Source: Bacillus subtilis subsp. subtilis str. 168 | Lineage (GTDB): Bacteria > Bacillota > Bacilli > Bacillales > Bacillaceae | DNA length: 64,000 nucleotides | Direction: 5' to 3' | Assembly (NCBI RefSeq): GCF_000009045.1 | Contig: NC_000964.3 | Location: 3,782,001-3,846,000, forward strand | In this document: one piece after another, positions 36,840 through 37,218 of the stretch | Numbering within the stretch: position 1 is the stretch's first letter | How the letters are laid out: each line of letters opens with the position of its first letter | Program-made: the position numbers and the translations under genes | The notes under the pieces: generated by a model | Databases searched by the model: none | Told to the model about the DNA's origin: nothing | What the model saw: the letters and a program-made list of their open reading frames with translations, nothing else

Positions 36840-36865
36840 GTTTACGACTTGTCAGCTTTGGGAAC
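36840..36865 (+). promoter_or_regulatory. SigB promoter of ywjC
   Basis: GTTTAC-14 bp-GGGAAC. Confidence 0.7.
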
Positions 36866-36905
36866 TTAGGCTATATAAGACAACAATCGATGGAGGAGAA
36901 AGATC

Positions 36906-37178
36906 ATGAAAAATATCAAGTCTCTGAAAGTAGCCGCACAGGCCTTTACTTTAAGAAATTTGATTCATCTTTATAAAATGTGCCATTCCGGAAGCCACGA
37001 GGTTTATATTTATTCAAAGAAAACGATGTGCAAAATCAAAAGCTTAATTGAGCTTGAAACGTTCCGCATGGCTCATAATGAAAAGGAATATCTGATCGTA
37101 GTTGAAGGAACAAAAGCATCACAGCTCATTGAAAAATTCCAAAATCTCATCGAGCCTGCTGAGAGAGAAGCGCTCTAA
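36906..37178 (+). CDS. ywjC: General stress protein; candidate remote HPr/Crh-fold protein
   Basis: 90 aa, GGAGGAG SD; aligns with HPr at R17, L22, V33, K45-S46 (see findings). Confidence 0.8.
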   Translation: MKNIKSLKVAAQAFTLRNLIHLYKMCHSGSHEVYIYSKKTMCKIKSLIELETFRMAHNEKEYLIVVEGTKASQLIEKFQNLIEPAEREAL

Positions 37179-37187
37179 CTTACATAC

Positions 37188-37218
37188 AAAAAAGGATAGA
37201 CATCTGTCTATCCTTTTT
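37188..37218. terminator. Bidirectional terminator between ywjC and ywjB
   Basis: AAAAAGGATAGAC-ATCT-GTCTATCCTTTTT. Confidence 0.85.

Follow-up and report, generated by a model that had tools for sequence, protein, structure and literature searches.

HPr-fold proteins in Bacillus

Two HPr-fold proteins, HPr and Crh, are at the center of the textbook model of carbon catabolite control in Bacillus subtilis. HPr presents the face formed by its helices 1 and 2 to EI, HPrK/P and CcpA, while Crh is phosphorylated by HPrK/P and binds CcpA. EI-Ntr phosphorylates NPr (PtsO), the corresponding protein of the Gram-negative nitrogen PTS, in which the active-site His is kept. Another small HPr-like protein, Bc1009, has been described in B. 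cereus. Its gene is directly controlled by SigB, and the protein reportedly modulates a large sub-regulon, comprising over 180 SigB-dependent proteins, as well as motility, without regulating SigB itself; according to its authors, there is no B. subtilis counterpart (PMC9912610, PMC12848376).

Here we analyze the B. subtilis gene ywjC, located in a window of 64,000 nucleotides (strain 168, contig NC_000964.3, positions 3,782,001 to 3,846,000; coordinates below are those of the window). An earlier note, made from the DNA sequence alone, had proposed the ywjC product as a candidate third HPr/Crh-like protein under SigB control. This proposal stands at the level of the fold and probably also at the level of the superfamily. 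The note knew of no such description, and our literature search likewise gave no paper connecting ywjC with HPr. YwjC appears to be undescribed as an HPr-fold protein.

The ywjC gene and its control by SigB

The ywjC coding sequence (36906..37178, + strand) is an open reading frame for a protein of 90 residues (10.5 kDa, pI 9.15) with the translation MKNIKSLKVAAQAFTLRNLIHLYKMCHSGSHEVYIYSKKTMCKIKSLIELETFRMAHNEKEYLIVVEGTKASQLIEKFQNLIEPAEREAL. Its ribosome-binding site, GGAGGAG (36892..36898, + strand), lies 7 nt before the ATG at 36906 and is kept in orthologous loci. A SigB-type promoter (36840..36865, + strand) can likewise be read directly from the sequence: the −35 element GTTTAC (36840-36845) is separated by a 14-nt spacer from the −10 element GGGAAC (36860-36865) and lies 14 nt past the stop codon of the upstream gene uvsE (UvdE family). 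On the other side of ywjC, RNA folding revealed a bidirectional intrinsic terminator (37189..37218) shared with the convergent gene ywjB. It consists of an A-tract, an 8-bp G+C-containing stem (13 pairs if the flanking A-U pairs are included) and a U-tract, and its folding energy is −19.9 kcal/mol (z = −8.1 compared with shuffled sequences); a consensus terminator scan missed this hairpin. ywjC is a monocistronic gene transcribed from the SigB promoter. With dN/dS values of 0.03-0.13 against its orthologs, it is also a real gene under strong purifying selection. The neighboring genes code for a PLD-type cardiolipin synthase, UvdE, a convergently transcribed RibD_C-family protein (ywjB) and an ABC exporter, and no PTS or catabolite-repression genes were found among the neighbors in the window.

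Assignment to the SigB regulon was based on a promoter of the form GTTTaa-N12-15-GGGwAw together with SigB-dependent expression. For ywjC, the promoter was read here and regulon membership is taken from the literature: two sources count the gene among the SigB regulon (PMC7824861; PMC12434083), and one of them also gives detection of the protein upon ethanol stress (PMC12434083). The pattern GTTTA[CTG]-N14/15-GGGAA[CT] is retained upstream of ywjC in all 16 orthologous loci that were read, including that of B. atrophaeus; the search for these loci used a narrow alignment and reached the B. subtilis group only. Among more distant relatives, GTTTAT-N14-GGGTAT is present at −61 upstream of a 51%-identical B. 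gobiensis homolog, and a possible SigB-type promoter occurs at −161 of one Priestia paralog, while none was found upstream of four others. The background frequency of the pattern is ~0.03-0.05 per 250 nt. The earlier note had quoted the same 90 residues with the same numbering, codon 46 as AGC at 37041-37043 and the promoter GTTTAC-N14-GGGAAC, from which it proposed SigB control. Both readings are exact, and the proposed control agrees with the 16 conserved promoters and with the regulon listings.

Both ywjC and ywjB are also among the genes tabulated for the CcpA-M17R mutant (PMC4591507, table). The same list contains many other genes of the SigB regulon, such as yflT, ywzA, ywmE, ytxJ and yxnA (PMC4591507), and the presence of ywjC in it looks like a general shift of the SigB regulon rather than specific control of ywjC by CcpA.

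Predicted structure of YwjC

AlphaFold2 modeling of YwjC from the single sequence gave a pLDDT of 90.3 and a pTM of 0.80, with all five models at 80 or above. The predicted elements (β1 3-10, α1 16-27, β2 32-36, β3 41-44, α2 47-56, β4 61-68 and α3 71-88) follow the β-α-β-β-α-β-α order of HPr at nearly the same residue numbers. When the model was compared with the PDB using Foldseek, ranks 1-35 were all occupied by HPr, NPr or Crh (TM 0.52-0.66 over 78-93 alignment columns), headed by NPr 5t17 (E = 9.7e-4). The rmsd was mostly about 3 Å, rising up to 6.3 Å for domain-swapped crystal forms of Crh. Below rank 35 came KH domains and enzyme fragments, with lower probability. We also modeled a Priestia relative (P0030, 29% identical) with the family alignment. 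The same topology was obtained (pLDDT 79.6), the top 24 Foldseek matches were all HPr or Crh, and the best of them was Crh 1zvv_J from the CcpA-Crh-DNA complex (TM 0.64/0.69). The predicted models are thus open-faced β-sandwiches of the HPr superfamily size (about 85-90 residues), the fold that had been proposed from sequence. A TM of about 0.6 and an rmsd of about 3 Å nevertheless indicate a fold-level rather than a close match of the models.

Sequence relationship to HPr and Crh

The B. subtilis HPr sequence used for the comparison is identical to PDB 2fep_S, and for each of the sequences employed here (HPr, Crh, E. coli HPr and E. faecalis HPr) there is an identical PDB or nr entry. Within the ungapped YwjC/HPr register 15-56, six of the 42 positions are identical (R17, L22, V33, K45, S46 and A56), and the BLOSUM62 score is +4 compared with −34 ± 12 for shuffled sequences (P = 0.003). 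For the whole-length register the P-value against residue shuffles is 0.0003, and offset 0 is the best among 21 offsets. The shuffle tests therefore place the pairwise resemblance modestly above chance. BLASTP of YwjC against HPr gave no match, phmmer against the PDB gave noise only (e.g. TBK1 ULD and TraJ), and there was no match in NCBIfam. Pfam PF00381 did align with YwjC in register (13.2 bits, E = 0.097), amid unrelated noise matches and below the gathering threshold of 23 bits. Any match to PF00381 was obtained for only 2 of 19 family members, so that by sequence YwjC falls outside this Pfam family.

The YwjC family was then built by exhaustive phmmer search over 1.84 billion representatives followed by a profile search; the phmmer relatives are 82-110 residues long and 29-51% identical to YwjC. 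Comparison of the family with an HPr+Crh alignment using hhalign gave a score of 27.6 (P = 1e-4, probability 55-58%), pairing YwjC 22-85 with HPr 22-84, S46 with S46, and placing a one-residue insertion before strand 4. A gap-free register from 15 to 56 and a single insertion before the E..G strand had been proposed beforehand, and hhalign arrived at the same arrangement independently. None of 200 column-shuffled HPr profiles reached this score (mean 10.4 ± 2.3, maximum 20.2), and the reversed profile scored 8.3. Against Crh alone the P-value was 1.2e-4 and against three HPr sequences 0.009, with profiles of different depths. Among natural small proteins in the PDB only Crh was matched by the family profile, in register (E about 0.5). 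Conversely, an HPr/Crh HMM gave positive scores for all 30 family members, reaching 16.5 bits, with per-sequence P-values from 3e-7 to 0.03. The two families share the invariant Gly after strand 4 (G68 aligned with G67), and in distant members a D/N-G-K/R-T-C motif matches N/D-G-K-T/K-V of HPr/Crh. Independent annotation pipelines have labeled distant relatives as 'PTS HPr-like phosphotransfer protein', 'HPr family phosphocarrier protein' or 'HPr domain-containing protein'. A profile search of a 5.8-billion-protein set gained no bona fide PF00381 protein, hence no transitive bridge to HPr, and none of the sequence methods reached a conventional family threshold for YwjC as HPr. Overall, the sequence support for kinship with HPr/Crh is weak but consistent.

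The best matches of the family profile in the PDB were in fact the de novo designs 4ney, 4nez and 4hhu, in which 'xxMIIFEGDDLEALEKALKEMI' aligned with family positions 60-88. We discounted them as an idealized strand-helix unit. The strand-4/helix-3 unit of YwjC (LIVVEGxxA...) does look like an idealized β-α unit, which may explain the high confidence of the single-sequence AlphaFold2 models.

It might be argued that YwjC is not homologous to HPr at all, that it has converged on a simple, designable topology and that its function is unrelated to HPr-type interactions. The idealized 'VVEG-helix' unit shared with the designs, the confidence obtained from a single sequence and the sub-threshold value of every sequence score all fit such an origin. 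However, all methods produced one and the same register, and the top 24-35 Foldseek matches came exclusively from the HPr family despite the many other small α/β folds in the PDB. The common invariant Gly and hairpin motif, the HMM scores of distant members and their HPr-like labels from other pipelines also speak against convergence, which we consider unlikely. According to the predicted models, YwjC is very probably a third, highly diverged HPr/Crh-fold protein of B. subtilis; its homology with HPr/Crh is probable, although not proven.

Phosphorylation-site positions

The position of the HPr active-site His15 is occupied in YwjC by Thr (codon 15, 36948..36950, + strand), the residue just before helix 1. 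Thr is found here in 22 of the 30 family members and His in none, and where a PTS phosphocarrier has His15 followed by A16-R17-P18-A19, YwjC has T15-L16-R17-N18-L19. With this His absent throughout the family, none of its members can act as a PTS carrier, and YwjC is PTS-incompetent, as had been proposed.

Ser46 of HPr/Crh corresponds to Ser46 of YwjC (codon AGC, 37041..37043, + strand), with which hhalign pairs it. In the models of both YwjC and P0030, helix 1 starts at residue 16 and helix 2 at residue 47, which makes residue 46 the helix N-cap. The identity of this residue changes even between sister species. Ser46 (AGC) is present in B. subtilis, B. halotolerans, B. mojavensis, B. stercoris, B. 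spizizenii, B. inaquosorum and B. rugosus, Asn46 (AAC) in B. tequilensis and B. mexicanus, and Asp46 (GAT or GAC) in B. atrophaeus, B. velezensis, B. siamensis, B. nakamurai, Bacillus sp. ISL-51 and B. gobiensis. The Scopulibacillus, Pullulanibacillus and Priestia relatives have Arg, Tyr, Gln, His, Glu, Lys or Ser. Thus, within Bacillus, only the B. subtilis clade has Ser46, and many distant family members have Arg46. The path from Asp through Asn to Ser requires only single-base steps (GAY to AAC to AGC). Ser, Asn, Asp and Thr are the favored residues at helix N-caps, and this preference explains the alternation of Ser, Asn and Asp within Bacillus without invoking phosphorylation. Ser46 of B. 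subtilis YwjC is a lineage-specific helix N-cap variant and not a conserved regulatory phosphorylation site.

The surroundings of Ser46 have changed as well. Instead of the K-S-[IL]-[MF]-G signature of the regulatory HPr/Crh branch in Gram-positive bacteria, YwjC has K45-S46-L-I-E. Two helix-2 residues that are invariant or nearly invariant in the HPr/Crh alignment, G49 and M51, are both replaced by Glu, and residue 54, Gly in HPr and Ala in Crh, is Arg. In addition to the near-invariant G49, YwjC lacks the HPr/Crh invariants G13, P18, A19 and D69-E70. Its pI of 9.15 compares with 4.86 for HPr and 4.90 for Crh. No YwjC phosphosite was present in one phosphoproteome supplement, from a study without stress conditions. 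Neither at the ywjC locus nor around six distant relatives did we see a genomic link of the family to hprK, ccpA or PTS genes.

These data bear directly on the regulatory role put forward in the earlier note, namely that YwjC is a stress-induced HPr paralog that may be phosphorylated at Ser46 by HPrK/P, or titrate this enzyme, and may act on CcpA, MgsA or GapA, thereby coupling the general stress response to carbon catabolite control. In structural terms Ser46 is equivalent to that of HPr, with K45 before it and L47-I48 after it compared with K-S-I-M in HPr. R17 is retained in the Bacillus clade, and the family profile is closer to Crh than to HPr proper. Moreover, the ancestral Asp46 corresponds to a classical phosphomimetic, HPr S46D, from which Ser could be reached by the single-base steps described above. 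However, Ser46 itself is restricted to the subtilis clade. The note had stated that a lack of S46 conservation would refute it, and such a lack was found: sister species have Asn or Asp at this position, and more distant members have Arg and other residues. Judging from sequence, the variability of residue 46, the altered helix 2, the basic pI and the lack of a genomic link therefore make a conserved role of YwjC as an HPrK substrate or CcpA co-repressor via Ser46 unlikely. With the non-stress phosphoproteome also silent, we regard the stress-induced paralog acting through HPrK/P as distinctly unlikely. A regulatory role of Ser46 limited to the B. subtilis lineage and derived from the phosphomimetic-like Asp46 is possible but unlikely.

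The YwjC family and its conserved surface

The family is small and occurs only in Bacillaceae and Sporolactobacillaceae: the B. subtilis group, B. gobiensis, Priestia endophytica, P. filamentosa, Scopulibacillus and Pullulanibacillus. In every case the gene stands alone in a variable neighborhood, and the neighborhoods of six distant relatives contained no conserved partner gene and no PTS or catabolite-repression genes. Two diverged family clusters were found under the species names Priestia endophytica/P. filamentosa (P0029, P0030) and Scopulibacillus cellulosilyticus (P0023, P0027); these taxa probably carry two YwjC paralogs per genome. For one of the Priestia copies (L022), a yflT-like general stress gene is located two genes upstream.

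Several database entries required caution. A 1044-residue repeat protein (P0025) proved to be a spurious match. Four homologs (P0005, 130 residues; P0007; P0008; P0015) derive from mis-called or frameshifted ywjC genes; they extend N-terminally through the promoter region or have altered C-termini, and are unfit for conservation analysis. A contig labeled Streptomyces sp. NPDC056835 (L001, the whole 2689-nt contig) codes for YwjC with 100% identity, and its promoter differs in just two spacer bases; on a Kosakonia cowanii contig (L017:3001-3144) there is a partial copy with 98% identity. Each case looks like contamination of an unrelated assembly with B. subtilis-group DNA.

In 30 family sequences the positions of lowest entropy are M1, I4, S6, Y23, C26, Y34, C42, L50, F53, L63, V65, E67 and G68. 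One set of these, Y23, C26, C42, L50 and F53, aligns with the buried HPr core (V23, A26, V42, V/L50 and L53). Another, comprising I4, S6, Y34, L63, V65 and E67, maps to the sheet face that is solvent-exposed and polar in HPr, as deduced from strand alternation on the assumption that strand 1 is shifted by one residue. The residues of HPr on this face are N/T34, T62, S/T64 and S/E/D66, and Crh already has F34 and I64. Such a pattern of conservation suggests that, when YwjC is functional, self-association or a partner may bury the open sheet face. Helix 2 (I48-ELETFRM-55) is also invariant in the Bacillus clade, and the HPr-type face may therefore still matter there.

The two Cys residues deserve separate consideration. 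Cys26 (36981-36983) is found in 27 of 30 members and Cys42 (37029-37031) in 26, and a C26-H27-x3-H31 motif together with H57 is nearly invariant in the Bacillus clade. In a gene of the general stress regulon, they could together form a redox or metal site, turning the HPr scaffold into a stress sensor or buffer. However, both Cys residues align with buried positions of HPr (A26 and V42) and may be mere core residues, while His27, His31 and His57 are not kept outside the Bacillus clade. We find such a thiol or metal switch very unlikely.

Proposed function of YwjC

We consider it very improbable that an ancestral Asp46 YwjC mimicked P-Ser46-HPr, was made only under SigB-activating stress and engaged an HPr/Crh partner such as CcpA, HPrK/P, MgsA or GapA irrespective of sugar, and that the Asp-Asn-Ser replacements in the B. 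subtilis clade then made this constitutive signal phosphorylation-gated. If true, this would make YwjC a third HPrK/P-responsive regulator that links stress to catabolite repression.

The explanation that we prefer is that YwjC is a phosphotransfer-dead, SigB-controlled protein of the HPr superfamily that acts by binding a partner. Taken as a whole, we consider it moderately probable. The ywjC product would belong to the HPr/Crh structural superfamily but have diverged strongly and lost the chemistry of phosphotransfer. By analogy with Crh, NPr and B. cereus Bc1009, it most likely serves as a small, stress-induced protein-binding modulator, which would work stoichiometrically rather than as an enzyme or a phosphocarrier. 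Its functional surface would be the open sheet face (I4, S6, Y34, L63, V65 and E67), available for self-association or for a partner; the conservation pattern makes this face the more likely candidate compared with the helix-1/helix-2 face.

A third HPr-fold protein, made only under SigB-activating stress and devoid of both phosphorylation sites, would be a candidate link between stress and metabolism, or might represent a novel function of the HPr scaffold. The candidate gains weight from the B. cereus work, in which a SigB-dependent HPr-like protein was found to affect a large sub-regulon. The analysis also provides a predicted fold for a functionally uncharacterized general stress protein and delimits a small, Bacilli-specific and putatively HPr-derived family that is missed by Pfam.

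Comparison with known HPr-fold proteins

Bc1009 is the nearest functional precedent for an HPr-fold regulator controlled by a stress sigma factor, and we liken it to YwjC on the basis of its published description. The genomic setting is different, since bc1009 lies in the sigB-rsbKY cluster, and the phmmer search with YwjC over 1.84 billion representatives gave no match attributable to the B. cereus group. NPr, a mainly regulatory paralog of HPr, provided the top Foldseek match (5t17), yet it has the active-site His that YwjC lacks.

HPr itself (PtsH, PF00381) shares with YwjC the open-faced β-sandwich, near-equal numbering of the elements and the Gly that follows strand 4, and in both proteins hydrophobic residues occupy the core positions 23, 26, 33, 35, 42, 44, 50 and 53. 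In contrast to HPr, YwjC is without His15, a conserved Ser46, G13, P18, A19 and D69-E70, it scores 13.2 bits where PF00381 requires 23, and its gene is not part of a pts operon.

Crh keeps the invariant K45-S46-I-M-G and R17-P18-A19 and is acidic (pI 4.9), whereas YwjC, with a pI of 9.15, belongs to a family variable at position 46, has E49, E51 and R54, stays below the PF00381 threshold and is controlled by SigB. YwjC and Crh also share several features. Both are proteins of about 85-90 residues with the same predicted fold, and in both His15 is replaced, so that neither serves the PTS. The best TM of the family model was obtained with Crh in the CcpA-Crh-DNA complex, and the family profile also scores best against Crh. 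Finally, both proteins are restricted to Bacilli, and both have hydrophobic residues at the sheet positions 34 and 64/65.
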